Assembly: GCA_002269645.1 (NCBI GenBank)
Contig: NIVC01000788.1
Location: 186,001-250,000, forward strand
Source: Macrostomum lignano
Lineage: Eukaryota
Direction of reading: 5' to 3'
Length of the DNA: 64,000 nucleotides
Part shown: positions 31,401 to 55,400 of the stretch, in pieces
Numbering within the stretch: the first letter of the stretch is position 1
Layout of the letters: every line of letters starts with the position of its first letter
Notes under the pieces: model-generated
Seen by the model: only the letters and a program-made list of their open reading frames with translations
What the model was told of the DNA's origin: nothing
The model's database searches: none
Translations under genes and position numbers: made by a program

Positions 31401-34400
31401 GCGGGTCATTCAGTGGGTCAACATGGATGACTCACTGGTGATGAAGATGAGAGGCGGATACGAGACTCGGGCAGAGATGAACTGAGACTCTCACCCTGAG
31501 ATGCGGCCCATTGAGCAGCTGGCGCAGCTGCAGGCAGTCTGCTACATAATCTTTGTCGTGGCACTCGGCCAGGCAGTCCAGGGCGTCTTGAGTTCGCGAC
31601 ACAGCGTCCGCCGGTATCTGGCCGCGTATGCTGGCGCCCAGGTTTCTGCTGTTGATCTGGTCGTAGAGCTGACAGGAAAGCGGGGGGGGGGGTGGCGTCT
31701 GTGTTTTAAAAGCACCATAGGAGATACGAGCGAGTATTGAAATACTCGTATTCCAAAATTAAAGTTGACAAGCAAGCGAGCAGACAAATATAATCGAGCT
31801 ATGACTAATTTGAGTTCAGTTTCAGGTCATAAATCAATTCATGCAGTTTACGTCAACGATAGTTATTTTAGCTATTAAATCAATTAAGTTTAAGCCAGTT
31901 CAGTTGAGATTAGTTTACTTCAGTTCACTTCATTTGAGTTCAGTTCAGTTCAGTTCAGTTTAGTTCAGTTCAGTTCAGTTCAGTTCAGTTCAGCTAAGCT
32001 CAGCTTTCTGTTCAGCCCATCAGCTCACGAACGCAAAAGAATGAAAAATAGAAATAAAGAAATAAAAGGGTACAATGCTGTGCATACTCCCTCATTCCCG
32101 CATTCTGAAGAAATCAAAGCAAGTCATATTTCAAGTCAAGCACTCGTGCTACTGGGTGCTAATCCAGCTGTATTTATTTATAAACTCAGCTGTGAATCTT
32201 AATAACAGAAAATATCTAAAACACACAAACACATACGCGCAAAGATTGCATAACATAAATCACTAACAAAACTGTCCAGTTGGACTGACAGGATCCAGTT
32301 AAAATACAGTTAGCTTAATTTATTATGAAACACCCAGGTCACTAGAATCCACCCCAAACCCTAGCAGCGTACAGTCGCGCGCAGCCCTAACACCAATTTC
32401 AAGATATATTTGTTTGTTAGAAAACGCAAACTAATGATTAACGATTTCCTAAAGCCTGCTCTTCTCCGACTTGAGCCCTCGTGCCTGAGGGGAGGTCAAA
32501 TTTTAGTTGAGGAAAAAAACTCCGACTAATGATGCTGAGCAAAAACTGTTTGAGCAGTCAAAGTCCGTGACAGTCGGAGGCACCAGCGGAATAGGCCTCA
32601 TTATCAGCAATAAAAAATCTCGTTTGCGAAAACTTTTTAATGACAAAGAAGAATTTGCTGTTCCTGAAGGCTTTCGAGTTTAAATTTTTTTTGCTGTTCA
32701 AAAGCCTCACTCAACGAATCAAAGAGTCGAGTTTGGTCAGGAGTGCCAAGATTGATGTCAGCAGCAATAAGATTGGTGTCAGGAGCACAAATATTGGTGT
32801 CAAGAGTGCCAAGATTGGTCGTCAGGAGTGCCAAGATTGGTTGTCAGGAGTACCAAGATTAGTTGTCAGGAGCACCAAGATTGGTTATCAGAAGCACCAA
32901 GATTGGATGTCAGGAGCATCAAGATTGGTTATGAGGAGGAGCACCAAGATTGGTTATCAGGAGTGGCAAGAGTGGTGTCAGGAGCACCAAGATTGGTTAT
33001 CAGGAGTGGCAAGAGTGGTGTCAGGAGCACCAAGATTGGTTATCAGGAGTGGCAAGAGTGGTGTCAGGAGCACCAAGATTGGTTATCAGGAGTGGCAAGA
33101 GTGGTGTCAGGAGCACCAAGATTGGTTGTCAGGAGCACCAAGATTGGTTATGAGGAGCACCAAGATTGGTTATCAGGAGTGGCAAGAGTGGTGTCAGGAG
33201 CACCAAGATTGGATGTCAGGAGCACCAAGATTGGTTATGAGGAGCACCAAAATTGGTTATCAGGAGTGGCAAGAGTGGTGTCAGGAGCACCAAGATTGGT
33301 TGTCAGGAGTGGCAAGAGTGGTGTCAGGAGCACCAAGATTGGTTGTCGGGAGTGGCAAGAGTGGTGTCAGGAGCACCAAGATTGGTTGTCAGGAGCACCA
33401 AGATTGGATGTCAGGAGCACCAAGATTGGTTTCAGGAGTGGCAAGAGTGGTGTCAGGAGCACCAAGTGTGGTGTCAGGAGCATCAAGATTGGTGTCAGGA
33501 GTGCGAAGCAAGGTTGGTTGATGGGATTGCCAAGATTGGTTGCCAGTGGCGCAGAAAGAGGCACCCAAAGCAAAATCTGGGCCTCAATGAGCTTAAATCT
33601 TTGAGCCGCTGAGGGGGCCTTAGATTTGATATGATTTATATCCATTTTTGCGCGCTCCGATGCGGAAAAACATCCCACTAATATTTTCTATCATCGTCGG
33701 TTCGCTGAAAAACCGTCTTTCCCAAACGATATCGTTTCCATAGCAACGAATAAAAAGTACGCGCGCAAGCACAGAAGCGTATGGGAGAAGCCTAGGAAAT
33801 CCAGTATCTGGTGGCATCGAATCGCGTGACACTCAGCTTCTGAAAACTATAAAGTTATCTACATCACAAAACTACCCCCGCTCCAAAATCCCATAAATTA
33901 GCGAATTTTTTCAGCATCCAGATAATCTGAGCCAATCCGATAAGGCGCATTTATTAGCAAAGCTTTTTTGCACACATTGCAAAACAAAAATTGATTTTTT
34001 TCTCCCCGATTTGCTTGCCGTGCGTTTTTTTTGAGTAGCCAGCACGCCACGCGTCCAATTGATGATGAAGAAGGAGTGTAGAGAAGTCGATTTAAAACAC
34101 GCAATGCAGCTCAATATGCCGGATGCTTGAAGAAGTTTTTGCTCGGACTTCTATGCTGGGCAAAATATAATAATAATAATTATTATTATCAGTATTATAT
34201 AAGTGCTAAGCTCCCGTCGTGAGCTGGGAACTATTCGTGCTTGATTAGAATCCCTCTTTGTGACCACACCAGCGCATCTCTCCTCTCTCCAGTTTAGGCG
34301 CACTTATTAAAAGAAGATTGCAAAGACAGAGTCGCCAGTCAGTTTCATTCGGGGCTGGGAAATACGAAGGCGGGAAGCAATGGGAATTGAAGGTCAACGC

Positions 34401-37400
34401 TAGTTTAACACGCGGGGCCGATGCTTGGGCGGCGCTGGTTTTCAAACCGAACCCAAGCCCAATGAGCCCTCTGGGAATTGAAGCTGGGAAGCTGGGAAAA
34501 GTAGACAGAGATGAGGGGGGCAGAGGGGCAAATTATGAGACTCTCATAATTCATTAGCTGGCAAAAAGGAAAGGCAAAGAAGGGAAGCTACAAGAAGCAG
34601 TAGAAGGCTTGACCAGGTCGAGGACAGGGTCGGGAGGGAGAGCACAGCACATAAGAAGAGGAGGAGCTCTAAGAGGGCAGGGGAGAGCGCTGAGGTGGGC
34701 ACTAGGAGACAATTTTGGGCTGTCCTGGCAGCAGAATTTCAAATTCCAATCCGCTGCAGAGCATCTCTCCTTCTTTCCACTCCCCTCTGCAGTGCCCCTT
34801 CTCGGTTCTGCACCCTCCGCAAGGAGCCCCGCCACCATCAGCGCACGCTCGTTTGCTCGCTCGCTCGCCAAAAAAAGAACTCGTCGCCTCTTCTAGCGGC
34901 GCCGAGCTCCCCAAAGTCCCAGCTAATTAGGGGCGGATGGGGAGGTGAGGAGAGAGAGGGCTGGGTGGCAGGAGAGGCAGCAGAGGTTGGCCATGTACTT
35001 GAGCTGATTACAGCGAGTTCCTTTAGACTAATAATACTCTGATTTCCCAGTAGTCTCTAACTCTACCCACTGCGGTTGACCCACCGCTTGGTCGGGTATC
35101 TCATCATAGTCAGTTATATTCCTGTCAGATCCCTACATCTGAAGATCCCAGATCCCTAAAACTAAAGATCCCAGATCCCACAACTAAAGATCCCAGATTC
35201 CTACAACTAATGAGCCCAGATCCCTACATCTGAAGATCCCATATCCCTACAACTAAAAATCCCATATCCCTGCAACTAACGAGCTCAGATACCTACAACC
35301 AATGAGCCCAGATCCCTACTAATGAGCCCAGAACCCTACTAATGAGCCCAGATCCCTAAAACTAATGAGCCCAGATACCTGAAAATAAAGATCTCAGATC
35401 CCTAAAACTAAATATCCCAGATCCCTACAACTAATGAGCCCAGATCCCTACATCTGAAGATCCCATATCCCTACAACTAAATATCCCAGATCCCTACAAC
35501 TAATGAGCCCAGATCCCTACATCTGAAGATCCCATATCCCTACAACTAAAGATCCCAGATCCCTACAACTAATGAGCCCAGATCCCTACATCTGAAGATC
35601 CCATATCCCTATAACTAAAGAGCCCAGATCCCTACATCTGAAGATCCCATATCCCTACAACTAAAGATCCCAGATCCCTACAACTAATGAGCCCAGATCC
35701 CTACATCTGAAGATCCCACATCCCTACAACTAAAGATCCCAGATCCCTACAACTAATGAGCCCAGATACCTGAAAATAAAGATCCCAGATCCCTAAAACT
35801 AAATATCCCAGATGCCTACAACTAATTAGCCCTGATCCCTGAAAATAAAGATTCCAGATCCCTTCAACTAAAGATCCCAGATCCCTACAAGACAATAAAT
35901 GGCGTTATTTATTATTCATCGAGACATAGAAAGACTTTAGAGGAGAATTTGAACTGGAAAAGCAAACAGCGCTGCAGCTGCAGCAGGTGACTGTAAGCAA
36001 ACAAGACAGGGAATCCCACTTCCCAATCCAAATTAGCACCATCCTTTCAAAAAGTGAAATGGAAAATTTCGAGAAGAACACTAAGACGAACCAAAGAAAA
36101 AAGGCAAACAGTGGACGATGCAAGGATGCGCGAGTAAAACAGGGAAATAGGATATAGGAAGGGCATATCCAGTGCAGACAGTCAATGGGAAGCCATCTGG
36201 ACCGGGTAATCAACGTTTCTCCCTGGAGGTTTCGGTTTTTTTACGGAACTCTTCACTTCAGGTCTGGTCCTCTACACCTCTCTGCAATTTGTCTCAAGCA
36301 AATATAATAGACAAGCGGCACTTACTGTTGAATATGATTAAAAAGATAAATATGAATATGCTGTGGGCACCCTGGCGCAACCAAGTGGTCTAGCGCGGCG
36401 CTTTAATGTGCCAGCGGCCCGATTCCAAGTGCAGTCGCTTTAATTCAGGGCTAAATTGGAATCTCGGCTTGGCTCTGCTCGTGCAGCTAACGCCCTTGAG
36501 GGCCAACCCCATAAAAGCAAAGTGAAGTGTACATGTTTAACGATAAATAAAGTTAGGACCGTTGTACACTCCTGTGTGAGTGTGTGCCTGTGCGTATGAC
36601 TGCGTACGTATCCGCGCGCTTGTGTGCCTGCTCAGGGAAGTCGGCGGAATGGTTGGACTATATTTCTATTACATACACATATGGTACATTCACGCCCTCG
36701 AAGGTCAACCTCCAAAGCACACAGAGAGTGCCTGACTAGGAGACAGTCAGGGCCGCTGTACACCCTGTGTGAGCGTGCGTGCTCAGGGGTCAGTGTGGCA
36801 TATCTACAATTTTTCCTTCTCTCCAACTCCGAGTCGATTTGCGGCGGCTTTGAAAAATACGATCCCCTTTTCTCACTGTGCGACAAACTAACCGATGAAT
36901 AAGTAACTATTCGAACTTCAAACTGCCACTAAGAGATTAAACATCACAGGCTGAGGGGCCAACACAATATGAGTCATCAATCATTATAGGATTACAGATG
37001 CGACTGTGATTGGAATATAAGGATCGCGTGTGTAGCAGCTGACTTTGATGAAGTAGCAGCTATAGCACTGGGGCTATTGGCCTGCCTAAGTTAACACAGC
37101 CGCCTATCGATAATAGTATAGAATTATCGCTGTGTGATTGCAAGCTTGCACTCAATTACATGTAGGGAGCGCCTCTGTGCCTGCCACTCTGAGCAATGTA
37201 GAGTTTACATGAAAATATAGTGGGATTATGGAATTGATTATCAATATACGGTAACTTATGGGATTATGAACTGTACCGATTGGGATTGTGAATTGAACCG
37301 ATTGGGATTATGAAATGAACGGATTAGGATTATGAATGAAACCGATTGGGATTATGAATAGAAACGATTAGGATTATGAATGGAACCGATTGGGATTATG

Positions 37401-40400
37401 AATGGAACCGATTGGGATTATGAATTAAACCGATTGGGATTATGAATCGAACCGATTGGGATTATGAATACATGTAGAAACGATTGGGATTATGAAATGA
37501 ACGGGTTAGGATTATGAATTCAACCGATTGGAATCATAAATGGAACCGATTGGGATTATAAAAGGAACCGATTAGGATTATGAATTGAACCGATTGGGAT
37601 TATGAATAGAAACGATTGGGATTATGAAACGAACGGATTAGGATTATGAATGGAACCGATTGGGATTATGAATGGAACCGATTGGGATTGTGAATAGAAA
37701 CGATTGGGATTATAAATGGAACCGATTGGGATTATGAATTGAACCGATTGGGACTATAAATGGAACCGATTGGGATTATGAATTGAACCGATTGGGATTA
37801 TGAATACATGTAGAAACGATTAGGATTATGAATGGAACCGATTAGGATTATGAATAGAACCGATTAGGATTATGAATGGAACTGATTAAGATTATGAATA
37901 GAAACGATTGGGATTATGAATGGAACCGATTGGGATTATGAATTAAACCGATTGGGATTATGAATCGAACCGATTGGGATTATGAATACATGTAGAAACG
38001 ATTGGGATTATGAAATGAACGGGTTAGGATTATGAATTCAACCGATTGGAATCATAAATGGAACCGATTGGGATTATAAAAGGAACCGATTAGGATTATG
38101 AATTGAACCGATTGGGATTATGAATAGAAACGATTGGGATTATGAATTGAACCGATTAGGATTATGAATAGAAACGATTGGGATTATGAATAGAAAACGA
38201 TTGGGATTATGAAATGAACGGATTAGGATTATGAATTGAACCGATTGGAATCATAAATGGAACCGATTGGGATTAAAAATGGAAACGATTAAGATTATGA
38301 ATGGAACCGATTAAGATTATGAATAGAAACGATTGGGATTATGAATTGAACCGATTAGGATTATGAATAGAACCGATTAAGATTATGAATGGAACTGATT
38401 AAGATTATGAATAGAAACGATTGGGATTATAAATGGAACCGATTGGGATTATGAATTGAACCGATTGGGATTATGAATACATGTAGAAACGATTGGGATT
38501 ATGAAATGAACGGGTTAGAATTATGAATTGAACCGATTGGAATCATAAATGGAACCGATTGGGATTATAAATGGAACCGATTAGGATTATGAATTGAACC
38601 GATTGGGATTATGAATAGAAACGATTGGGATTATGAATTGAACCGATTAGGATTATGAATAGAAACTATTGGGATTATGAAATGAACGGGTTAGAATTAT
38701 GAATTGAACCGATTGGAATCATAAATGGAACCGATTGGGATTATAAATAGAAACGATTGGGATTATGAATTGAACCGATTAGGATTATGAATAGAAACGA
38801 TTGGGATTATGAATAGAAAACGATTGGGATTATGAAATGAACGGATTAGGATTATGAATTCAACCGATTGGAATCATAAATGGAACCGATTGGGATTATA
38901 AATGGAACCGATTAGGATTATGAATTGAACCGATTGGGGTTATGAATAGAACCGATTGAGGTTATGAATAGAAACGATTAGGATTATTAATTGAACCGAT
39001 TGGGATTATAAATGGAAACGATTAGGATTATGAATAGAACCGATTAGGGTTATGAATAGAAACGATTGGGACTATGCTTAGAACTGGTGAATTATAAAAA
39101 ATGATGAGGTTATACATGTAAATACAGCCTATAAAGTTGAGAAGAGAACAAAAATGATGGTGAAAAAAACTGGTTGATCCGCCGGTTGGGACAAGAGAAC
39201 AAAGGAAGTGAGAACTGCCAAAGCATAGAGCAGAGAGCTGTGAGCAACAGGACTCAGTAAACGCCCGCGTACACTCTCAACACTGGCGCCTCCACGGGTG
39301 GTCGGCAAGGCCACCTAAGCGCTGCCGGATTCTTGAGAAGTAAAGAACAAATATTGACTACTGTGGCAATAGCGGCAGCATCGTACAACATTCTGGCGGC
39401 CCGTCCACACTAAGGACCAAGTCATTCTCAATGGGCTAAGCTGTCTCTCAGCCTCCAGCTCCTGCATCACATATTGCAATACTGGTTTCAGCGGAAGCTG
39501 ATTCAAGTCTTTTTGTCTCATAAAGAGAGAGAGAGAGATTTTTAAGGGCGGAATCAAACCCTACAATGTACTGTCAAGTCCTCAAGTCACACTGAAGAGT
39601 CACACTAGCAACATTAAAAATAATAATCATAGTAATAATTGATTACACCTGCCCTAATTGGGCCAGAAGTGCAACCGACAGCTCAGCCGCAGCTATTGCG
39701 CGGCCCACCTGAAGGCTGCGTACGGGCTGTTCAGTCCAAGGACTGGAGGGTCGCCACACACACCCTCAATTACCCCAGCTAATGCTGGCACCCATTTTAC
39801 AGCTGGGTGAACTGAAGCAATGCGGAGTTAAGTGCCTTGCTCAAGGACGCAAATTGTTCCAAGTGGGATCGGGAATCGAACCCCCGACCTTCAAGTCGTG
39901 AGTCCAACGCTCTAACCAGTAGGCTACAACTCCTTGGAGCAGACACAGAACACAGTGCTTTTACTAACTGCTAACAATCAGCTACGTATTAAGAAAGCAA
40001 AAGCTGCATAACAAAGGCCCAGCTACTAACTGAGACAATTAGACCCTCAGTTATGTGATTTCTCTTCTTTACCGCATAGACTAGCAATTTTTGCGCACAA
40101 ACTGGAGTCCCGAAAGCGAGCCGTCTAATAATAAAATCGATAATAAAGAAAGAAGGATACAAAAAAGTGAGATAGGATATAAAAAAGCACCGGATGTTTA
40201 CGCCGTCATAGCTCAGGTAAAAACTGGCATTTCAGAGCCGGACACTTGGAGGGACGCTACAGACAGGGCCTGCGGGGTCTTTCAAAGCCGAGACCCCAAT
40301 GCTGGGTTGGGGGCTGCAGTTGGGAGGAAATTAGATGCCTTCCATTCCCCCGGGGGGAGTCGCTAGGAAATGATCTGTTGCGCTACTGGCAAGAGGAGGC

Positions 40401-43400
40401 TGCTTAAAGGAGACGATAACTCCACGCACCCACTTACTCAGGTTGCTCTGAGCACCTTTGATTATCGTTCTTAGGCAGGTAGCAGTTGCCTTGCCTAACC
40501 ATCTTCTTCTCGTCTGCTTTCAATGATCTCCTGCTCTCACACTATTGCTGCTTCAGAAGCAGCCCGGGCAACGAAAGGAAGGAAGGAAGGAAGAAAGGTG
40601 CTTCACTCCTGATCTCATAGAAGTGGCACCCTCACTCTTGAACTGGGCCACCTGCGTGCCTTCTCGTGTATCCAGTATGTAGGGAAAATTAAAAAGCAAC
40701 CGTTTCTGACTGTGTGGTAAATTGACTACAACTTGCTGCAACACTTAAATTTATCCCATTCTTTGCCAGAAAAGATGTACTTTTCCCAGTGTAGTTAAAC
40801 CCTTAACCGTAAAAACCAGATGCGGATATTAAAAAAGCAAGACATTTTATTCAAAAATTCGAGCAGCAACCTGCCATGCACAGACGCGTATTCGGCTGCA
40901 AAGGTCTCCTAAATAGCCACTCTTCAGACTGGGTAAAACAGGCAGGGCCAAGAGCACTTGAACGGCAAGAAAATGAGAAGAGAAGGCTAGATTTTAATAG
41001 AGAGGGAAAAAAGAAGCGAAAGAAAAAGCCCAGACTCGAATAGGAAATTTGAAAATCCCAATCTTCCCATACGGTTGCCACTTCAGCGGCGGCAGTCACG
41101 GCCAGCCAGTCTGTTACCTGGCAAAGCCGCTGGCTGATCAGGCCGACCTCCTCGGCGCCCAAATCCATCACGGAGGCGACAACGGCAGCGGTTGATGCGG
41201 CTATCATGTTTGGCGAAACAGACGACATTGCTTGTCCCTGTTGATTTGCTGAAGGCTGCTGCTGCTGCTGCTGTGGCTGATGAAGCGACGGCGAAATCTG
41301 CTCGTAGTCGACGGGCATTGAGTTTGAAGCGGCAGCCGCCGCGGCGCCGGCAGAAGCGGCCGAATTGACGATGCCGTAGAGCAGCAGCGCGGTGTCCCTG
41401 GCTGACAGGTAGGCGCGGCGGGGACTCTGCGGCGCGCTGCTGCCGCTGTTGGCGCCGCTGCTGCAACAGCTGGCGCGGCTCTCAGCATCGGCTTCAGCGG
41501 CCGCGGAGACGTCGGCGCTAACAGAGACCGACGGCTGAGCGGGCGGCGGTCGGCGCTGAATAGACGAAGCCGTCAGGCTGGAATGCCTGGCCGGGGAGCC
41601 GCCGCTGGGCCGCCGGAGCTGCTCGCGACTGTCCGAGTAGCAGGCCGACAGCCGGTCCAGAGCGGCTCGGGGCACCCACCGGTGCGCCGGCGTCGAGGCA
41701 GCCGTGCCGACGGTGGGAGTTAAAGTGGTAGTGGCCGCCACCGCTGCCCCGGCCGCTGTGGACGCTGGCTCGCGAATGGAAGGAGTAGGCGTCACCAGCG
41801 CCGCGGCGGTCGTTGCCGCTGCAGAGTCACCCCCGCACCGGCTGTGGTGCAAGGAGGACAGCATCAGCGGAGGCAGCGACTGAAACAGGGAATCGTCGAC
41901 AGCCGATTGGCAGGGCGCCGCCGCGGCGCTGAAGATGTTTGGCTGGCTCTGATGGCAGGTGCACTGGTGCAGCAGGGGGCGCAGGGTGGAGCATAGATTG
42001 TCCCAGGAGGCTGCCACCGCCAACAACCGCTGATCTGGCGGGGGCGGCGGTGGCTGCTGTGGTGTCTGAGGAGGCGGCGCAGCGCTGCACGTGCAGGTGT
42101 ATGCGAGGTTCTGCGGCGGCAGATGCGCTTGCGGCTGGTGCTGCTGGTAGCAGCCGCCGGCTCCGCTATGACAGGTGCAGGTCGATCCGGCGCCATTTGA
42201 CGCAACTGAGTGCAGCGAGTTGGCTAGCGCGGTTGGCCAGACCACAGAGGCTGAGGCCAGCTGGGGACAGGCTGCGGGATAGTGCTGATCGGCAAACTGC
42301 TGTGGCGGAGGCGGCGGCGGCAGCTGCGAATGCTGCGCTGGGCAGGGCAGCTCAGCGGTGGCGGAGGCGGCCGAGGACTGTTGGGAAACTTTGACTGCAC
42401 CGCAGGCTTCTAAGGAGATGCGGAGCGCTTCGGCCAGGCGAACCCAGTCTAACTCCGGCGGCTGTTGCTGGGCCTGCTGCTGCTGCTGCTGTGGTTGCTG
42501 CTGCTGCTGATGATGATGGCACTGTTGGTCTCCGCGAAGGTCCATATTATTATTATTAGACCCAGAGAAGCAGACACAGAACGGCTAAACAGGTGCTTGG
42601 CGGTGCCGGGTCAGTCGCGCCAGATGCCGGTGCCGGTAAGCTGACAATGTCCGGGGTCCATTAATTATTCGGCCCCATCCACGCGACAGGGGAGGGTATA
42701 AGGAGGCCTGGGTCGGACCAGTGAGTATTGCTCTACAATTTTGGTGTCCGGTTTTCTCCGCTATCTGCTGGGAGGCGGCTGCGGGAATAGCTGACGAGGG
42801 AGCAGCCAGTTGAGTAAAATACGGGGCAATGGGATTGGACCGGACTGGTTAGGAGTTGTGCTCTGTTAAATTTTTAAATTGAACGAAGCTGAACTGCCAA
42901 GGAGGCGGAAAAGGGGAACGGGAAGGGAGAAGTAGAAGCGGAGCGGAGAGATGGCGGAGAGGTGGGGATCGCCTGTAGGCTGGGGATTAGCGGGCCGCCA
43001 CCCCTCGGTGAGTTGGACCGGCGCTGCTTGTCGCTCGTTCTACGGCCGCCGCCCCCAGTAGTGTGTGGGAGCAGCGGCGGCCACTTGAGCACGGAACGGC
43101 TGTTGAGGGCGAATTTGCTCACCCCTTAGGTTGCGAGGATTAACGGGAGGCGGGGATAAGGGAGAAGCGGATGCCGGGACTGGACTGGGGGAATTCCGAC
43201 AAATGGATGCGGTAGCGAGGCAGGAGGCGGGGTTTAAATTCTTCAGGCAGCTGGGACCAAGGGGACAAGGCTACGGGGGTAAGAGAGTTGAAGAGTAGAT
43301 TTCACGACAGGCCAGAGTGAAACAAGTGACTGTTAGGCAGGCTGGGAGCGCTGGAGAGTTTGAACTAAGAAAGCAATAAAGGAATAAGGAGAGGGGAAAA

Positions 43401-46400
43401 GACTATGACCAAAGCGCGCTCACAAGGGCAGCTGGAGAAAAGTATAGGGCATGGAAACGGCTGGGCCTCCCCACTCAACTCGCTATTTATATCGCCCCGC
43501 CCCTCACCCTCCTCTTTCTCTCTCTCCTATCATGCGTGTCTCCGGGACCCCTTCCTACTCCTCGTCTATGCCTAGATTCCTAGTTGCGCTGCGCAGGGCC
43601 AGACGCGCTCTTTGCCTACTAGCAGAGAGTAGCTTTGGGTCGCATAGTTTGGAGGAGACGGGAGACTTCGAAAGAGAGAGGTAGGACAAACTGACAGCCA
43701 ATAATCGCAAACGGCCTGCGCAAGGACGCGACGATAGGGCGTAGACTAAGTTAATCTGCAGGGGAAATCCGCAGCTGAAGGAACAGCTCGAAGAGCGAGG
43801 AAGGAGAAGGCGACTTAGGGGTAGACTGGGACTACCTCGGAATAGACGCAGGGGCAAGGCGAAGGAAGAAAACTGAAGCTGATTCGGAGGAGTGACAATC
43901 ACGACATCGAGATTTGATGGGGAAGGTAGGTATGGATATAGGGCCAAGTGCATTGGGAAGCTCCTCGTTCTCATTATCCATTTCCAAGAATACGCTCATA
44001 GATAATAGCGATAAGCTCACCGCGACAATCATTAACTTTCGTGTTTGCAAGCTGCTTGCACGCACATCAATAAATGAGGACTACCCTCGACTGGTGAAAA
44101 ACCACTTGGTTGTTACTCAGCAAGCTTGAAATTAATAATTATCGATTTAATACATTTCCTTGTATCAATTTTGAAGTTGGATTCGCTGGCAAGTAGCTAG
44201 TAGGAAATTGCTGCTAGGGTAACAACAACAGACAGGATGGAAATGGGAAATCGTTGGACGAGAAATGTCCATCGCAATGCGAAATCAATGCACGAAGGAA
44301 GCCAGCGAGACCTGCATGGAGCTAAATATAGTCGTCTAAGAGCGAAGCATACAGGGTCATCTAAGCCCAACCAGCGGAGGCAGCGCGCGTGTGGCGTGTT
44401 CTTGTTTCGCGATGAAATGTAAATCAATAAACAATCGGGCAAAAATCCAGACTGTGCTCGTGCGCAACACATTTCTGAGCCGGCCAGTAGCTCGGAATCT
44501 TATTAATTATTAATTATACTGACGCTTGTTTAACAGGCAGCTTACATGACCGGTAGAAAGGTTACAGAAACTAATACCTCTAGCGGAAGAAGAAACGTAA
44601 GCCTGTACTTCTTGTAGTACTAAATATTATTTTGTAGTTGACTTTCTACTGCGCACCGCTACCAAAAAGGCTTCGAAGGTAACACTTGGCGTTGAAAACC
44701 GATTTTATTTTGTTTTAAGCTTTCAAGTTGCGAATTAAGCAACATTGCACCAATAGTTTTTATGCTGCTTAATTACTGGTAGAAGCAGTAACGTAGCGCG
44801 TAATGAGCAGTTACCCGATGCCAGTGCGAAAGATGTGAACAACAAGAGTAAGCTTGCTTTCGCACTCGCGAGGATCTTACTCAGGGTGAATTCCAGCTAT
44901 CCTTTCTGGGTCAACTATTTCCCAATCATACACGGCATACGCGTAAAAGAGCAATAACGCTTCTTCATTATCTATCAACTAGACGGACAATGAACAACGG
45001 ATGTCCAAGTGATCGCGACATCTGGACGGTTAAACAATATCCGGGACGGGGTGTCTCTACAGCCACAGAATGCCGACAGTTTCCTGATCTACTCGTACCT
45101 TCGGAAATAAACTGAACTAGAAGGCATCGCTGGTCATCATCCTGAGTCTAGTTGCGTCTCCGCTCTGACAGAGTTAAATACATTCAAGTTTGATCATCTG
45201 ACAGCTGCATTGAATACATTTCAAAAAATGCACGAATAATCCCAGGAAGCTGTAACACTCATATTTATATTTATACAGATGTTTCGCTGAAGTATTCCAG
45301 AGATTCCAGAGAACCGATTCAAACGTCATAAGCACGTTTATACTAGCACTTGTCTGCATATGCACCGATGGATTTAGCTTGCATTATTTTTGTTGGCTCC
45401 ACGAACCGTTTTTTTAGCGGTGCGGTGCTGCGGAACTAGCATAGATTTTCGAGTCAGGAATAAAAAATATGCTCGCCTGGAAAAGAGTTCGCACACCACA
45501 AAATCCACAGCACTGGCACAGTGTTTGCAGCTAGCAACTCACTCGTGTATATATAGGAGTATCGATGGCGAAGGCGAGTAACAACTTACTAGTTAGTTAC
45601 AATGTGCACTCGAGTCACATTTGAGACCCTCCGGCGACGGAAAACTTGATTGATTTATCCGAAACTAAGAGCTGAGAGAGTCCCGCCCACTCTCTTCCCT
45701 ATCTCTCTCTCCCCGACTTCGGCACCGTCCAGCGAGGGGCAGCTTAGCTGACATTCTGGCTAAAGGACAGCAACCACAAACTTTACTTGACTTCTTATAT
45801 TGAAAGCGAGAAAGCTTTTCTAGGAAAGCTCAAACGTCCGATTCCAGATTCCGAATTACAAATCCAGATCATGAATCCCAGATCCTTAATTACAAATCCA
45901 GATCATAGATCCCACATCCCGAATCACAAATCCAGATCATGAATTCCAGATCCCGAATCACAAATCCAGATCATGGATTCCAGATCCCCAATTACAAATT
46001 CAGATCATGGATCCCACATCCCGAATCACAAATCCAGATCATGGATCCCAGATCCCAAATCACAAATCCAGATCATGGGTCCCACATCTCGAATTACAAA
46101 TCCAGATCATGGATCCCAGATCCCAAATCACAAATCCAGATCATGGATCCCACATCCCGAATCACAAATCCAGATCATGGATCCCACATCCCGAATCACA
46201 AATCCAGATCATGGATCCCAGATCCCAAATCACAAATCCAGATCATGGATCCCACATCCCGAATCACAAATCCAGATCATGGATCCCACATCCCGAATCA
46301 CAAATCCAGATCATGGATCCCAGATCCCGAATCACAAATCCAAATCATGGATCCCACATCCCGAATCACAAATCCAGATCATGGATCCCACATCCCGAAT

Positions 46401-49400
46401 CACAAATCCAGATCATGGATCCCACATCCCGAATCACAAATCCAGATCATGGATCCCAGATCCCGAATCACAAATCCAGATCATGGATCCCACATCCCGA
46501 ATCACAAATCCAGATCATGGATCCCAGATCCTTAATTACAAATCCAGATCATGGATCCCAGATCCCGAAAATCCAGATCATGGATCCCAGATCCCGAATC
46601 ACAAATCCAGATGATAGACCTTGTGGAACAGCAGGGGATATAGAGAGAAGCCAATGATACGCTGTTGCAGCCACTTGCGTGCCAGAACCAAGAAAGCGCA
46701 GCTGTCTGTCTGTGAGTCTTTACTCAAAAGAATTATAGATCAAAAATGGCAGCAGGCCATCTACACAAGCCCTGAAGAGAAGAAGTAGAAAAAAGTGCAT
46801 ATGTTTGATGCATAGTTCCAGTGGATAGCATTTTTACATCGATCCAAAGTTCCATGTTACAAGAGATATCAAATTTTTATTACTGACACATAATTCTGGC
46901 AGATAAGAATAATATTAATAACAATAATTGATTACACCTGCCCTAATGACCAGATGTGCAACCGACAGCTCAGCCGCAGCTATTGCACGGCACATCTGAA
47001 GGCTGCGTCCGGCTATTCAGTCCAAGGACTGGGGGTCGCCACACACCCTCAATTACCCCAGCTAATGCTGGCACCCATTGCTCAAGGACACAAGTTGTTC
47101 CAGTGGGATCGGAAATCGAACCTCCGACCTTCAAGTCGTAAGTCCGACGCTCTAACCACTAGGCTACATTCTCCCCTGTAGCAGCAATACACTACAGCCA
47201 ATAAATCAAAGGGCATCAACTGCTGACTGAATTAAACCGCAACCCAAAATAATCCTTGCTCACTTTATTACAAGGCTCTTCAATAAATCCGGTTTTGAAG
47301 AGAGCAAATACATAAAATTGGGAACAGCTGGACGCGCGCGTAGCAATTAATTAATCCGCGGCCTCGACAGTTCTGCCATCCAAAGCATTTCCATCGGTGC
47401 GACACCCACTCCTGTGAGCAGCAACTCGGCACAAAAAACTGCTCTGGTCATTCTCGCAAAGGCTGAACTAGATTGGCATTAGGAAATTGGACTGTAGTGT
47501 CCGTACGCCCGTAAATATGAGAGCACAAATTCCAGATCCCAAATCCCGAATCTGAGAACACAAATTCCAGATCCCAAATCCCGAATCTGAGAGCACAAAT
47601 TGCTGATCCCAAATCCCGAATCTGAGAGCACAAATTCCAGATCCCAAATTCCGAATCTGAGAGCACGAATTCCAGATCCCAAATCCCGAATCTGAGAGCA
47701 CAAATTCCAGATCCCAAATTCCGAATCTGAGAGCACAAATTCGAGATCCCAAATCCCGAATCTGAGAGCACAAATTCCAGATCCCAAATCCCGAATCTGA
47801 GAGCACAAATTCCAGATCCCAAATTCCGAATCTGAGAGCACAAATTGCTGATCCCAAATCCCGAATCTGAGAGCAAAAATTGCTGATCCCAAATTCCGAA
47901 TCTGAGAGCACAAATTCCAGATCCCAAATTCCGAATCTGAGAGCACAAATTCGAGATCCCAAATCCCGAATCTGAGAGCACAAATTCCAGATCCCAAATC
48001 CCGAATCTGAGAGCACAAATTCCAGATCCCAAATTCCGAATCTGAGAGCACAAATTCCAGATCCCAAATCCCGAATCTGAGAGCAAAAATTGCTGATCCC
48101 AAATTCCGAATCTGAGAGCACAAATTCCAGATCCCAAATTCCGAATCTGAGAGCACGAATTCCAGATCCCAAATCCCGAATCTGAGAGCAAAAATTGCTG
48201 ATCCCAAATCCCGAATCTGAGAGCACAAATTCCAGATCCCAAATTCCGAATCTGAGAGCACAAATTCCAGATCCCAAATCCCGAATCTGAGAGCAAAAAT
48301 TGCTGATCCCAAATTCCGAATCTGAGAGCACAAATTCCAGATCCCAAATTCCGAATCTGAGAGCACGAATTCCAGATCCCAAATCCCGAATCTGAGAGCA
48401 CAAATTCCAGATCCCAAATTCCGAATCTGAGAGCACAAATTCGAGATCCCAAATCCCGAATCTGAGAGCACAAATTCCAGATCCCAAATCCCGAATCTGA
48501 GAGCACAAATTCCAGATCCCAAATTCCGAATCTGAGAGCACAAATTCCAGATCCCAAATCCCGAATCTGAGAGCACAAATTGCTGATCCCAAATTCCGAA
48601 TCTGAGAGCACGAATTCCAGATCCCAAATTCCGAATCTGAGATCTGAGATTCTAAATTCCAGATCCGAAATCTGAGACTCCGGATTCCGATCCGAAATCT
48701 GAGACTCCGAATTCCAGATCCAAAATCTGAGACTCCGAATTCCAGATCCGAAATCTGAGACTCCGAATTCCAGATCCGAAATCTGAGACTCCGGATTCCA
48801 GATCCGAAATCTGAGACTCCGGATTCCAGATCCGAAATCTGAGACTCCGAATTCCAGATCCGAAATCTGAGACTCCGAATTCCAGATCCGAAATCTGAGA
48901 CTCCGGATTCCAGATCCGAAATCTGAGACTCCGAATTCCAGATCCGAAATCTGAGACTCCGGATTCCAGATCCGAAATCTGAGACTCCGAATTCCAGATC
49001 CGAAATCTGAGACTCCGGATTCCAGATCCGAAATCTGAGACTCCGAATTCCAGATCCGAAATCTGAGACTCCGAATTCCAGATCCGAAATCTGAGACTCC
49101 GGATTCCAGATCCGAAATCTGAGACTCCGGATTCCAGATCCGAAATCTGAGACTCCGAATTCCAGATCCGAAATCTGAGACTCCGAATTCCAGATCCGAA
49201 ATCTGAGACTCCGGATTCCAGATCCGAAATCTGAGACTCCGAATTCCAGATCCGAAATCTGAGACTCCGGATTCCAGATCCGAAATCTGAGACTCCGAAT
49301 TCCAGATCCGAAATCTGAGATTCCGAATTCCAGATCCGAAATCTGAGACTCCAAAATACAGGAAAATTCTCGACAGATCAGTCTGAGCAGATGAAGCAGA

Positions 49401-52400
49401 TTTTGCCAGCAGGAGTTTGAATAATCCAAACAGCCTAATCCGGATTTGGCCGTCACAGAACCGGGACAAAGATTGCAGCAGCAGAAATTCATCGCCAACA
49501 AATCCAGCAGCCAAAAGCAGTTGGTTGTCAGCCAAGATCCCAAAGTAGAGAATAATGCTAATTAGATTTTCAATGCGACACCAACGAGGTGAACTCGAAT
49601 CGACGGGTAGAAACAAAAATATGCAAATGAGTCATGTGGGGTCTCAATATTCCCCAGACTCGTCTGGGGTTTATGCGCGCGCTCCGATCGCCCATCGATC
49701 CCAAGAGGAATGGGAGCAAAATCTAGTTGGTATGTATATAGAAAGGTCAACTAGAAATCAGGAGACGAATTGAAAACAGGTGCAAGACTTTCTGCGGCCC
49801 CGGCTCCAGACAGCGTGTTTGCACCAAAGCTTAAAAAACGTTAAGGTAAACGCCTAGCAGCGAGGATCCGGCCACATAGGGAACCATTTGCCTGCTTGCT
49901 AGTTCCAATCCGATGGGGTGCTGGTAGCTGGCGGTAGGCAGAGAAAAAATTGCTGATTCATTCAAATCTGAGGAAGAATTTTGGCCTTAGGATCCCAACT
50001 CGCCTGAAAAACCGAATTTAAGATCCCAGTTATCGAATCTGAGAATGCGGGTTTCCAATCTGAGAATCGAATTTCACTTTGAGAACCGAAATTCCAATCT
50101 AAACACCGAATTCTAAGACTCCAATCTGACAACCGCAATTCCAATCTGAGAACCGAAATTCCAATCTGACAACCGAAATTCCAATCTGACAACCGCAATT
50201 CCAATCTGAGAACCGAAATTCCAATCTGAGAACCGAAATTCCAATCTGAGAACCGAAATTCCAATCTGACAACCGAAATTCCAATCTGAGAACCGAAATT
50301 CCAATCTGACAACCGAAATTCCAATCTGAGAACCGCAATTCCAATCTGAGAATCGAATTTCACTTTGAGAACCGAAATTCCAATCTAAACACCGAATTCT
50401 AAGACTCCAATCTGACAACCGCAATTCCAATCTGAGAACCGAAATTCCAATCTGACAACCGAAATTCCAATCTGACAACCGCAATTCCAATCTGAGAACC
50501 GAAATTCCAATCTGACAACCGAAATTCCAATCTGACAACCGAAATTCCAATCTGAGAACCGAAATTCCAATCCGAGAACCGAAATTCCAATTTGAGAACC
50601 GAATTTCCAATCTGAGAATCGAAATTCCAATCTGAAAACCGAATTTCCAATCCGAGAACCGAAATTCCAATTTAAGAACCGAATTTTCAATCCGAGAACC
50701 GAAAATCCAATTTGAGAATCTAAATTTCAATCTGAGAACCGAAATTCCAATCTGAGAACCGAAAGTCCAATCTGAAAACCGAAAGTCCAATCTGAGAACC
50801 AAAATTCCAATCTCAGAATCAAAATTCCAATCGGATAATCCGAACTCATAATGAATCTGAGAAGATAAGGATCGGTGTGAGATTCTAAATCATGGCACTA
50901 AATCATGGCAAGAATTATTAAGATGATGAATATGTTGATACGCGAGATGAGATCCCAATCTAGGGAAGAATTAGCTGGATCCCAGCGGGATGCCCGCAGC
51001 GACATTCTAAAGCCTTGAAAGAATAAAAATCTCATCAAATCCGGCCTGAGAATGCTATCAGACTCTGCTTTGATCAAAAAGATTTGAGACGTCAGTGGCT
51101 AGCAAGAGATACATCCAAGGATTCTGGGGGGGGGGGGGGCAAGACGACACGGGAGTGGGGAAGAGATGACAGAGCGGATATAATAATTCCCAAAGTCGAA
51201 GCGGATCTCAAGACCGGTAGCAGCTGCATATTTGTGCCAAAAAACTGACTTAGGGCAGACTAGAGAGAATTATGAAGATGATGAAGCTCAGAAGCTGAGA
51301 CCGTATAACTGCATGACGGGGCGGGCGGCCGCAGGGAGGCGGCTACTAATACACAAGTCACGACAGCTTAATATTTGCCTAAGCCCCAGTCTGGCAGGAA
51401 AATTTGCTACCGCCCCAGATGGGAACACGGAAGAAGGGGGGGGGGTCGGGCGACCGGGAGTCAGAATCGTTGCGAGAAAAGAATTGCTGCAGCAGCAGCA
51501 GCAGCAGCCGGTTCTTGAAACTTCTGCAGCCTCCGCCGGTCAAAGAGTTCTAGAACCTGGAGTGACAGCAAAACCATCCCCGATTTTCCAATTGGCCAAG
51601 GAGTTCAAGAACTAGCACTCTGGAGTGACAGCTAAACCACCACCACCCCCGATTTTCTAATCGGCCAAGGAGTTCTAGAACTAGCACTCTGGAATGGCAG
51701 CTAAACCACCACCACCCCCGATTTTCTAATCGGTCAAGGAGCTCTAGAACTAGCACTCTGGAGTTACAGCTAAACCACCACCACTCCCGATTTTCTAATC
51801 GGCCAAGGAGTTCTAGAACTAGCACTCTGGAGTTACAGCTAAACCACCACCACCCCCGATTTTCTAATCGGCCAAGGAGTTCTAGAACTAGCACTCTGGA
51901 GTTACAGCTAAACCACCACCACCCCCGATTTTCTAATCGGCCAAGGAGCTCTAGAACTAGCACTCTGGAGTTACAGCTAAACCACCACCACCCCCGATTT
52001 TCTAATCGGCCAAGGAGTTCTAGAACTAGCACTCTGGAGTTACAGCTAAACCACCACCACCCCCGATTTTCTAATCGGCCAAGGAGTTCTAGAACTAGCA
52101 CTCTGGAGTTACAGCTAAACCACCACCACCCCCGATTTTCTAATCGGCCAAGGAGCTCTAGAACTAGCACTCTGGAGTGGCAGCTAAACCACCCCCCCGA
52201 TTTTCTTTTTAATCGAAGGTTTATTCAAGGCTAATTTTTCTTACTAAACTTGTATAAATATTGTTTTGTTAATCTCGCGTTATGCTTCTTTTGCAGCAAC
52301 AAAAATTTCAGCTAGTTTCGGGTCCAGAATCTACATCCAGAGCTCCATGACTCAGCAACCTTCCCAGGGCCTCTGTTTCTCTACCCTTTATATAAATTCT

Positions 52401-55400
52401 CCTTCTCCTTGGGGTTTAGTCGCGATTCCGGAGCAAATTGATCGCATCAAGATAGGCCCGAAACCAACTAAAGATGGAAGAAACGTGAATGGAAGAAAAA
52501 AATGGGAAAAGGCAGAGCAAGTGCATGCGCTTCAGTGCCTATTGGGCTAGAAAATATGACATAAATAAACCAACTCAGATCTATAGATCTGTCAAGCCTA
52601 ATATAGACACGCTCGAATAGATATTGGCTAACATTAACTAATAGGCCGAGGGTAAAATCCATATGCACATGCAGACAGCCTGGCCCAATTAGCTGGTACT
52701 TGAGACGCACGGTGCGATGAGTCAACTACTGGACTCGAATTTGTCAGTAGTCTCGACGCATTTGACGCTTGTATCACTAAATTTAACTTAACCAAAGCCA
52801 TAAGGCATTGTATGTGTAGCCATAACGCTTGTATGTGCCCAGGAATATTGTAATAATGTTACTAATATGGGAAGTAATAGAGCAATAACAAAAATCGATA
52901 TCATAACAATTAAAATTAACCGTATAGCTACTACAAAATCCACTTCTCTGAGACTCATTCCAATGACTCTTCGACTTTAGCACCAAGTATGATTTTATCA
53001 ATCATACATTCAGGTGACGGTTCAAGAAGCTTGAACAGTTAGGCCTGCACAACCTTGAAGAACAACAAGAACACACTGTACGCCACAATCAAATAGCAAC
53101 ACTGCACTTTCAGCCGCCCCCAACCCAAAAGGTTCAAAGACAGTATTGGAGAAAAGTCGATAACACTTTAGCTAAGGGCAAGACAAGAATAATTGGGAGT
53201 TGCAATGCAAATAAAGAGAATTTTTCAGACCAAATTAGAAGGTCAAAAACAGAGCAGCACGTCACAAAGGAGTAGCGAATCCTTAGCAGCATATCAACTC
53301 TCAGATATAGGGAGTCAATCAATAAGTTGTTAACAGCAGTGCTTAGCTGTTATTCATAATTGCAAGCATAAGAAACTATTGAATATAATATATATACTGA
53401 AAAGTTGTCGGGTGTACTTGAAAAACAATTCAAGCAAAGTGCTCTACTAGTAGTAGTATCCAGTAATAAAATAGTCATTCTGTATAAAAGACAAGATTTA
53501 CAACTCTTTGATGACAATACTGGACTTAAAATATCAGCCTGCCAGTCTATCAATCTACCAGTCTATCAATTTATCAGTCTATCAATCTATTAATCAACCT
53601 AGCAGTCTATTAGTCTATAAATCTATTAGTCTATAAATCTATTAGTCTATCAATCTATCTATCCATCTATCTATCGATCTATCAGTCTATCAATCTATCA
53701 GTCCATCAATCTGTCTATCAGTCTATAAATACATTATTCTATCAATCTATCTATAGATCTATCAGTCTATCAATCTATCAATCGACCAGTCTATCAATCT
53801 ATCAATCGACCAGTCTATCAATCTATCAATCGACCAGTCTATCAATCTATCAATCGACCAGTCTATCAATCTATCAATCGACCAGTCTATCAATCTATCA
53901 ATCGACCAGTCTATCAATCTATCAATCGACCAGTCTATCAATCTATCAATCGACCAGTCTATCAATCTATCAATCGACCAGCCTATCAATCTATCAATCG
54001 ACCAGTCTATCAATCTATCAATCGACCAGTCTATCAATCTATCAATCGACCAGTCTATCAATCTATCAATCGACCAGTCTATCAATCTATCAATCGACCA
54101 GTCTATCAATCTATCAATCGACCAGTCTATCAATCTATCAATCGACCAGTCTATCAATCTATCAATCGACCAGTCTATCAATCTATCAATCGACCAGTCT
54201 ATCAATCTCTCAATCGACCAGTCTATCAATCTATCAATCGACCAGTCTATCAATCTATCAATCGACCAGTCTATCAATCTATCAATCGACCAGTCTATCA
54301 ATCTATCAATCGACCAGTCTATCAATCTATCAATCGACCAGTCTATCAATCTATCAATCGACCAGTCTATCAATCTATCAATCGACCAGTCTATCAATCT
54401 ATCAATCGACCAGTCTATCAATCTATCAATCGACCAGTCTATCAATCTATCAATCGACCAGTCTATCAATCTATCAATCGACCAGTCTATCAATCTATCA
54501 ATCGACCAGTCTATCAATCTATCAATCGATCAGTCTATCAATCTAGTAATCTACCATCTACCATTTGATTAAAAAACATTTAAGAAAAAATAGATGTTAG
54601 CATAATAAACATTTGCTAAAGAACTGATCATAGTAGCAACAGTAGCAAAATACGCGCATATAACTACCAATCCAGCATGTACCAGCAAATTCGGGCACAA
54701 ACAATGAGCCTACCTCCAGCAGGGAGAGCAGCGCGCAGTCCTCGAAGACGCCCTGCAGTAGGTCGCGATCCTGTTCGCTGCAATCGGTGAGGCACTGCAT
54801 GTCCTCCAGGCTGTCCAAGATGGTCGACACGGCTGATAAAGAGTTAAGAGGATCAAATATTTGCAATTGCTGTAGACACTCACTAATCGGTAGCCTTATA
54901 TAATATCATTTTATTGCGTGCGAATACAAATGAAACTAATTGGCTCAAAAAATGTATGACAGAGTCGACAATAAAGACAGAGATCATTAATTACAAAGCT
55001 CCTAGATAGGCGTAGGCTGTTGAATATTAAAATAACTTAGCTACATTGACTAGCAACACGAGATACCTCACTGTCAAAGGAAGGCTAGCCTAAGATTTTT
55101 ACCTCTTGTATAATCTGTTCTTTTTTGGCAAAGGTATACAGCTATGCAGTCATGCTGGCTCTCGTTGAGGCGGAATTAAACAGCAAACAGAGTCTAAAAG
55201 CTAAAGAGATGCACTTCTTTACGCTGGCTTTTAACTGACCTGCTTCAGGGGATAGAAGCTCCATTAGTTTTATTTTAAGACTAGTACTATTTCTCACCTT
55301 ACTGAGTCAAGGTCGTTTTAGGGAAGAAATATATAGTATATGCATACATCTGATGCATGAAGCCATTATCCGTTTATATACAGCATTCACTATCCTGACA

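Follow-up and report, generated by a model that had tools for sequence, protein, structure and literature searches.

CASK scaffolds without a kinase domain are known from nematodes and insects. In Caenorhabditis elegans, lin-2 gives rise to LIN-2A and to the short product LIN-2B, which is made from a second, internal start and does not contain the CaM-kinase domain (PMC9632837). LIN-2B has about 78 unique residues; the common region runs from E420 of LIN-2A, which is E79 of LIN-2B, and the PDZ domain starts at R545 of LIN-2A, about 125 residues further on (PMC9632837). Drosophila Cask has two independent transcription starts, and CASK-alpha, with a unique N-terminus and no CaMK domain, has been described as MPP1-like (PMC4075472). 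In addition, RefSeq predicts short CASK isoforms in bees, such as isoform X12 of Osmia lignaria (P0123, XP_034184055.1), in which a unique low-complexity head of about 277 aa is fused to the CASK core just before ALLQAHDV; no L27 domain is matched in X12. Here, we describe a CASK paralogue of the flatworm Macrostomum lignano, encoded on the minus strand of a stretch of 64,000 nucleotides of contig NIVC01000788.1 (positions 186,001 to 250,000; the window, with position 1 as its first letter). The intron between its L27N and L27C exons holds a long open reading frame (ORF), of which positions 42545-41118 are likely to serve as an alternative first coding exon; the product would be a kinase-less CASK with a long disordered head. 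The novelty claimed for such an exon in an earlier, sequence-only reading of the window was overstated, since both C. elegans and Drosophila are well known to make CASK isoforms that have a unique N-terminus and no kinase (PMC9632837, PMC4075472).

We propose that a transcript would start inside the 23-kb L27N-L27C intron, that 42545-41118 would serve as the first coding exon, and that its end, CAG^GTAACA at 41118 (carets mark exon ends), would be spliced to the acceptor at 31668. The product of about 1022 aa would consist of a 476-aa disordered head rich in Q, A, P, and S, with short helical islands and Cys-Thr-Cys (CTC) motifs, followed by L27C, PDZ, SH3, and GK, and would act as a kinase-less MAGUK scaffold of the LIN-2B/CASK-alpha type. 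Judged by domain content, the interactions of L27C (with LIN-7/Veli), PDZ, and SH3-GK would be retained and the partners of the CaM kinase and L27N would be lost, whereas the lineage-specific head would contribute short-motif interactions of its own. The closest resemblance is to LIN-2B, which also has a unique head, is kinase-less, and joins the common part upstream of PDZ within the L27 region, but its head has about 78 aa instead of 476 aa. The insect isoforms, CASK-alpha and Osmia X12, share the unique head and the kinase-less core, but their heads join after both L27 domains, before ALLQAHDV and PDZ, whereas the Macrostomum product would keep L27C. Searches with the head retrieved proteins of M. 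lignano only and revealed no homology to LIN-2B, CASK-alpha, or the insect heads, although no direct alignment with LIN-2B or CASK-alpha was made. The heads appear to be lineage-specific, and the resemblance appears to be one of architecture and not of sequence. The locus would be a flatworm example of the nematode and insect pattern, an internal-start, kinase-less CASK scaffold with a fast-evolving unique head; it opens no new class of mechanism, and its general interest is modest.

The exons of the host gene were mapped by tblastn of the M. lignano CASK protein P0005 against the window and confirmed with Pfam (Table 1); human CASK was used only as a lead for finding exons, which were then confirmed with P0005 and Pfam. 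The window begins within the kinase domain. P0005 matched the kinase exons at 62287-62105 (80% identity) and 61934-61647 (71%) and L27N at 54836-54711 (71%). The eight exons from 26801 to 22297 code for the remainder of L27C, then PDZ, SH3, and GK. The L27N-L27C intron, 54713-31669, has a length of 23,045 nt and holds the ORF, which starts with aatATG at 42545 and extends over 564 codons to a stop at 40851. After 476 codons, a codon boundary coincides with CAG^GTAACA (41118^41117), and the phase is 0 at 41118, 31668, and 54714 alike. The ORF with its 476 codons, its non-repetitive nature, the donor on a codon boundary, and the LYDQINS exon as a phase-compatible next exon with its acceptor at 31668 were indeed all present on the minus strand as the sequence-only reading had described them. 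It is the sole long ORF of the intron that is not of satellite origin and contains only short triplet runs. At the local base composition, about 0.036 stops per codon are expected, and an open frame of 564 codons would arise by chance at about 1e-9 per start. Joining 42545-41118 to 31668 and the downstream exons gave an uninterrupted protein of 1022 aa, with Pfam matches to L27 (501-550; E = 6e-8), PDZ (585-661; 2e-18), SH3_2 (675-720; 4.5e-6), and Guanylate_kin (831-1008; 1e-61). The CaM-kinase-like domain and L27N are encoded upstream in the host gene and are, by construction, absent from this product. The earlier statement that the head replaces the kinase and most of L27N agrees with this layout: only the last residues of the third helix of L27N would remain, contributed by the LYDQINS exon.

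The same arrangement was found in a second CASK paralogue of M. lignano, L002 (contig NIVC01002087.1). There, an ORF of 484 codons (51167-52618) ends at ATG^GTGGGT in phase 0 and sits in an intron of 19 kb that is bounded by the L27N exon (35625-35750) on one side and the L27C exon (from 55175) on the other, that is, in the same intron and with the same phase-0 end as the ORF of the window. In both paralogues, the unique exon lies in an intron downstream of the kinase exons and is in frame with the next shared exon. When the head plus the L27C exon was searched without masking, low-complexity words saturated the candidates and P0001 only was recovered; a masked search recovered models of the L002 paralogue. 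Two of these, P0002 (UniProt A0A1I8IQ56) and P0004 (A0A1I8I8G3), have no kinase and read ...LWDWDSVVEALRYSL...SVRDTVMLLYGVIN...VGRIWERLGM^LYDHINS..., whereas the kinase isoform of this paralogue, P0006, has ...HSLLE^LYDHINS.... Thus, one acceptor exon is common to two alternative upstream exons. Since A0A1I8IQ56 and A0A1I8I8G3 show in the paralogue the junction that had been proposed for the window, a joining of the alternative first exon to LYDQINS is most likely here as well. The models agree with the window in a homologous head, the intron position, the phase, the junction ..RL(C/G)(Q/M)^LYD(Q/H)INS, and the downstream domains; they differ in that they come from another paralogue (the CASK cores are 79% identical), share only short islands in the head, and are unreviewed automatic models for which no describing paper was found. 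The L002 type is the first of the four CASK paralogues of M. lignano to branch off in a neighbour-joining tree. The other two, L003 and L004, gave no tblastn match to the exon, and their introns are short (1.1 kb in L004). Thus, the exon is old; two lineages have kept it open, and from the other two it has probably disappeared.

The heads of the window and L002 share five collinear islands, the last of which ends at the donor. Their consensus sequences are, in order, (L/W)DW..(A/V)EALR.SL, PPPPP..FAD, CTC.SG.G, S.RDT..LLYG..N, and SV.DL..E...VG.I..RL. A masked local alignment of the heads scored 55, compared with 29.2 ± 3.5 for shuffles (z = 7.3), and 112.6 with cheap gap extension, compared with 47.5 ± 8.1 (z = 8.0); not one of 400 composition-preserving shuffles matched either score. 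Of the 41 residues that are identical in the islands, 23 have different codons in the two paralogues (6 of 9 in island 4), and at the nucleotide level blastn detected no similarity of the window to L002, either near the exon or near the promoter. Therefore, it is the protein that is conserved. With a homologous ORF in the same intron of L002 and conservation at the protein level, 42545-41118 is very probably a genuine coding exon; its splicing, transcription start, and function at the window locus are inferred. In a disordered head that is divergent elsewhere, the islands are candidates for short linear motifs.

Several points weigh against an alternative first exon. The junction 41118>31668 and the start site at the window locus are predictions from the sequence, the donor GTAACA is weaker than the donor motif of M. 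lignano, GT[G/A]AG (PMC8629364), and the fused protein of the window paralogue was not found in a collection of 5.8 billion proteins. P0002 is an automatic, 5'-incomplete model that does not contain 213 aa of the L002 exon, and the boundaries of this gap are not GT-AG in L002. In a codon test based on CASK-exon codon usage, the sense frame was ahead of both remaining sense frames by 140 to 160 bits but no better than the reverse-complement frame, so that the test gives weak support; the GC content at third codon positions of the sense frame was 0.735, compared with 0.734 in the CASK exons. Finally, a near-identical second copy of the locus, L001, carries a stand-alone coding sequence (CDS) of 323 aa in GenBank, and there a CCC run that corresponds to position 41714 of the window has lost 1 bp, which breaks the frame. 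The two copies also differ by about 1% in exon and intron alike, with 10 substitutions in the exon (6 non-synonymous and 4 synonymous; ratio of non-synonymous to synonymous rates, dN/dS, about 0.5, not significant); with so few and so evenly spread changes, this pair cannot test constraint. As for P0002, the missing residues are mostly poly-Q/H and are open in L002 (51326-51970); the gap may stem from copy-number polymorphism in the low-complexity core or from faulty modelling.

The L001 contig is collinear with the window, with about 99% identity outside the satellites. Its CDS, PAA74977.1 (BOX15_Mlig023611g1), matches the first 280 residues of the head with 99% identity, after which the two sequences part; the CDS is annotated as a stand-alone hypothetical protein, and no CDS spanning the head and CASK is listed on L001. 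The length of 323 aa is due to the 1-bp frameshift and not to a natural stop, and the deletion itself is either an assembly error or the mark of a decaying redundant copy in a polyploid genome. For Mlig_3_7, the only source of the GenBank annotation was a genome-guided transcriptome in which ORFs were called by TransDecoder (PMC5730564); PAA74977.1 therefore implies transcription of the exon. To call the exon hidden, as had been done, was too strong, since a near-identical copy already has this CDS. What the present analysis offers is an annotation fix for a flatworm model organism, with a likely 1022-aa kinase-less CASK in place of the truncated "hypothetical protein" of the twin copy.

A separate CDS on L001, with none spanning, would also be expected if the ORF were a stand-alone nested gene, unspliced and polyadenylated, that encodes a 564-aa low-complexity protein ending at 40851. 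Such a gene could coexist with the fused isoform, and it would be in line with an AATAAA that overlaps the stop (40851-40846), an ATTAAA at 40998, and the lack of a fused protein of the window paralogue on record; the 564-aa read-through ORF had no exact match on record either. However, the part read through past 41118 does not behave like the end of a gene. In L001, a 2-bp indel shifts its frame and two substitutions alter the stop and the overlapping AATAAA, and with 3.2% it is the most divergent 250-bp bin between window and L001. In L002, read-through past the donor gives 15 unrelated codons and then a stop, and homology between the paralogues stops exactly at the donor. A conserved stop, C-terminal tail, and poly(A) signal of its own were thus not found, the UniProt models of the L002 paralogue are fused, and the length of the 323-aa CDS is a frameshift product. 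We consider a nested gene unlikely.

The region has a GC content of 56 to 58%, compared with about 44% in the flanks, and 72% of the head is made up of A, S, Q, P, T, G, R, E, D, and K, a low complexity in which open frames are common. If the ORF were a chance or decaying frame in a GC-rich, triplet-repeat-rich intronic island (for example a promoter, an enhancer, or a non-coding RNA), these features would be expected, as would the frameshift in L001, the non-significant dN/dS, and the absence of a homologue outside M. lignano. But two paralogues whose cores differ in 21% of their residues both retain, at this site, ORFs that exceed 475 codons, the collinear islands have been maintained at the protein level through synonymous change, and the conserved end is a phase-compatible donor in both. 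A non-functional frame is, therefore, very unlikely.

Upstream of the exon, the 16-codon upstream ORF (uORF), the donor at 43122-43121, and the GC box followed by TATAAATA that the sequence-only reading had listed are present where it had placed them. On the minus strand of the window, TATAAATA occurs only three times and GGGGCGGGG only twice; a pair less than 20 nt apart is unusual, yet no proof of function, and we hypothesize a TATA promoter at 43503-43484. If the candidate donor at 43122 is paired with the candidate acceptor at 42585, a 5' untranslated region (5'UTR) intron of 538 nt results, and the uORF would be intronic. The TAG at 42587-42585 is both the in-frame upstream stop that closes the ORF and part of this acceptor. 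The model of L002 has a similar layout, with small 5' exons (43203-43307 and 50929-51000) in the same intron and an acceptor 24 to 26 nt before its ATG.

A 35-nt spliced leader with a terminal ATG is added to the transcripts of about 30% of the genes of M. lignano (PMC8629364). From the TTTAG acceptor to the ATG of the exon, 13 codons (42584-42546) are open and in frame, so that either the ATG of a spliced leader or the phase-0 L27N exon could read directly into the exon. Trans-splicing of the leader at 42585 may be an alternative to an own promoter, and the leader ATG would be in frame. By the second route, the L27N exon would be spliced to 42585, and 42584-41118 would be a giant in-frame cassette within a kinase-containing CASK; its 1467 nt (489 codons) are free of stops, and the L27N donor and the acceptor at 31668 are both in phase 0. 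The L002 paralogue argues against such a cassette. Its frame is closed by a stop 12 codons before the ATG, and P0002 implies an acceptor (AG at 51140-51141) that is out of phase 0, so that a splice from L27N to it would give TTG TGA and run into a stop at once. The 5' exons of P0002 are unrelated, a kinase is missing from this model, and the insert would split the third helix of L27N. A cassette is extremely unlikely.

The 476 residues of the head comprise 83 Ala, 63 Ser, 55 Gln, 51 Pro, 18 Cys, 16 His, and 1 Lys. AlphaFold modelled the head with a mean predicted local distance difference test score (pLDDT) of 41.7 and 382 residues below 50. Its local maxima and helices fall on islands 1 and 4 and a further stretch of 20 residues, which cover the three motifs that had been named as helical before; the model is in agreement with a head that is mostly disordered with helices on these motifs. 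When the junction was modelled (head residues 366-476 with L27C and the linker; mean pLDDT, 49.7), helices crossed it into LYDQINS, but the confidence was too low for packing to be inferred. As had been stated, the head belongs to no known family: residues 1-476 gave no Pfam match even at E <= 1 and no PDB match, and searches with the head returned M. lignano proteins and none from outside Macrostomum. A profile search of 1.84 billion representatives was uninformative on the head, as the profile took in CASK columns (904 positions) and the list was dominated by MAGUKs.

We also considered a degenerate L27N at the C-terminus of the head, but there was no Pfam match, and hhalign against 22 CASK L27N sequences gave a probability of 0.04 to 0.08. 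A transposon or retroelement ORF, a match to which the sequence-only reading had set as refuting its exon, was rejected as well; there was no Pfam family, and related sequences were found only at the syntenic intron position of CASK copies and not as dispersed copies.

The CTC motif occurs three times in the window head, at residues 123, 151, and 195 (42179-42171, 42095-42087, and 41963-41955), and twice in the L002 head, at residues 109 and 241. Four of these five copies read TGCAC(C/G)TG and contain an E-box (CACCTG or CACGTG); the copy at residue 109 of L002 is TGTACGTG. Given the E-box DNA shared by four copies, the conservation of CTC could be one of protein or partly one of DNA. AlphaFold pairs two CTC motifs as a beta hairpin with low confidence. 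The role in condensates or membrane targeting that the sequence-only reading had suggested is hypothetical. A more far-reaching idea, which we hold to be doubtful, is that the head is a Macrostomum-specific functional module that dates from before the CASK paralogues diverged and has been retained in two of the four; its helices and CTC motifs would give a kinase-less CASK a new targeting mode (for example by lipidation or metal-dependent clustering) or condensates, perhaps with a stand-alone use or a spliced-leader ATG.

Table 1. Positions of the CASK exons, the alternative exon, and neighbouring features in the window
Feature	Position	Strand	Remarks
Alternative first coding exon (predicted), 476 codons from ATG to CAG^gtaaca	41118-42545	minus	phase 0; Q/A/P/S-rich, mostly disordered head
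Splice donor GTAACA after complete codon	41112-41117	minus	same in copy L001; GTGGGT at homologous L002 position
Island 1, residues 31-51, predicted helix	42393-42455	minus	L002: LWDWDSVVEALRYSLAAAAAA; AlphaFold helix 34-56 at local pLDDT maximum
Cys-Thr-Cys motif	42153-42185	minus	L002: LPCTCGSGRGS
Island 4, residues 381-396, predicted helix 382-406	41358-41405	minus	L002: SVRDTVMLLYGVINAS; pairwise BLASTP E = 0.009
Island 5, residues 458-476	41118-41174	minus	L002: SVRDLDGEAIDVVGVGRIWERLGM; ends at donor, predicted helix continues into LYDQINS
GC box GGGGCGGGG, then TATAAATA, candidate core promoter	43503-43495, 43491-43484	minus	sequence identical in L001
Candidate donor GG^GTGAGC of 5' non-coding exon	43122-43121	minus	fits GT[G/A]AG motif
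16-codon uORF	42661-42611	minus	
Candidate acceptor TTTAG^	42589-42585	minus	39 nt before ATG
Two CaM-kinase-domain exons, canonical isoform	~62287-62105, 61934-61698	minus	approximate limits of high-scoring segment pairs; bypassed by alternative isoform
Canonical L27N exon	54714-54854	minus	ends ..LLSLLE^gtaggc, phase 0; upstream boundary approximate; bypassed by alternative isoform
First shared exon, LYDQINS...GPHLR, start of L27C	31668-31495	minus	acceptor tgtcag^CTCTACGAC, phase 0; donor gtgaga
Later shared CASK exons (1)	26801-26619, 26545-26467, 26371-26286, 25348-25280	minus	
Later shared CASK exons (2)	24729-24598, 23767-23326, 22866-22568, 22473-22297	minus	last exon with stop
Satellite arrays (1)	32736-33501, 35126-35890, 37259-39076, 45840-46612, 47514-49352		
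Satellite arrays (2)	50053-50844, 51573-52193, 53546-54560, 55380-55768, 59529-61628		

The CASK exons of the window paralogue had no close match in the collection of 5.8 billion proteins, and the best M. lignano matches were 60 to 67% identical over L27C and the linker region. Of the CASK paralogues of M. lignano, which number at least four, this one seems to lack annotation altogether. On L002, the intron between the kinase and L27N (33780-35009, plus strand) carries a nested gene annotated in GenBank, the 409-aa product of which has several hydrophobic, transmembrane-like stretches; it had no significant Pfam match, and tblastn found no counterpart in the window.

Long tandem-repeat (satellite) arrays, with repeat units of 18 to 69 bp, crowd the CASK introns. 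These arrays give rise to spurious ORFs of up to 722 aa and to a strong GC skew at 60 to 62 kb, and their copy number differs between the window and L001.

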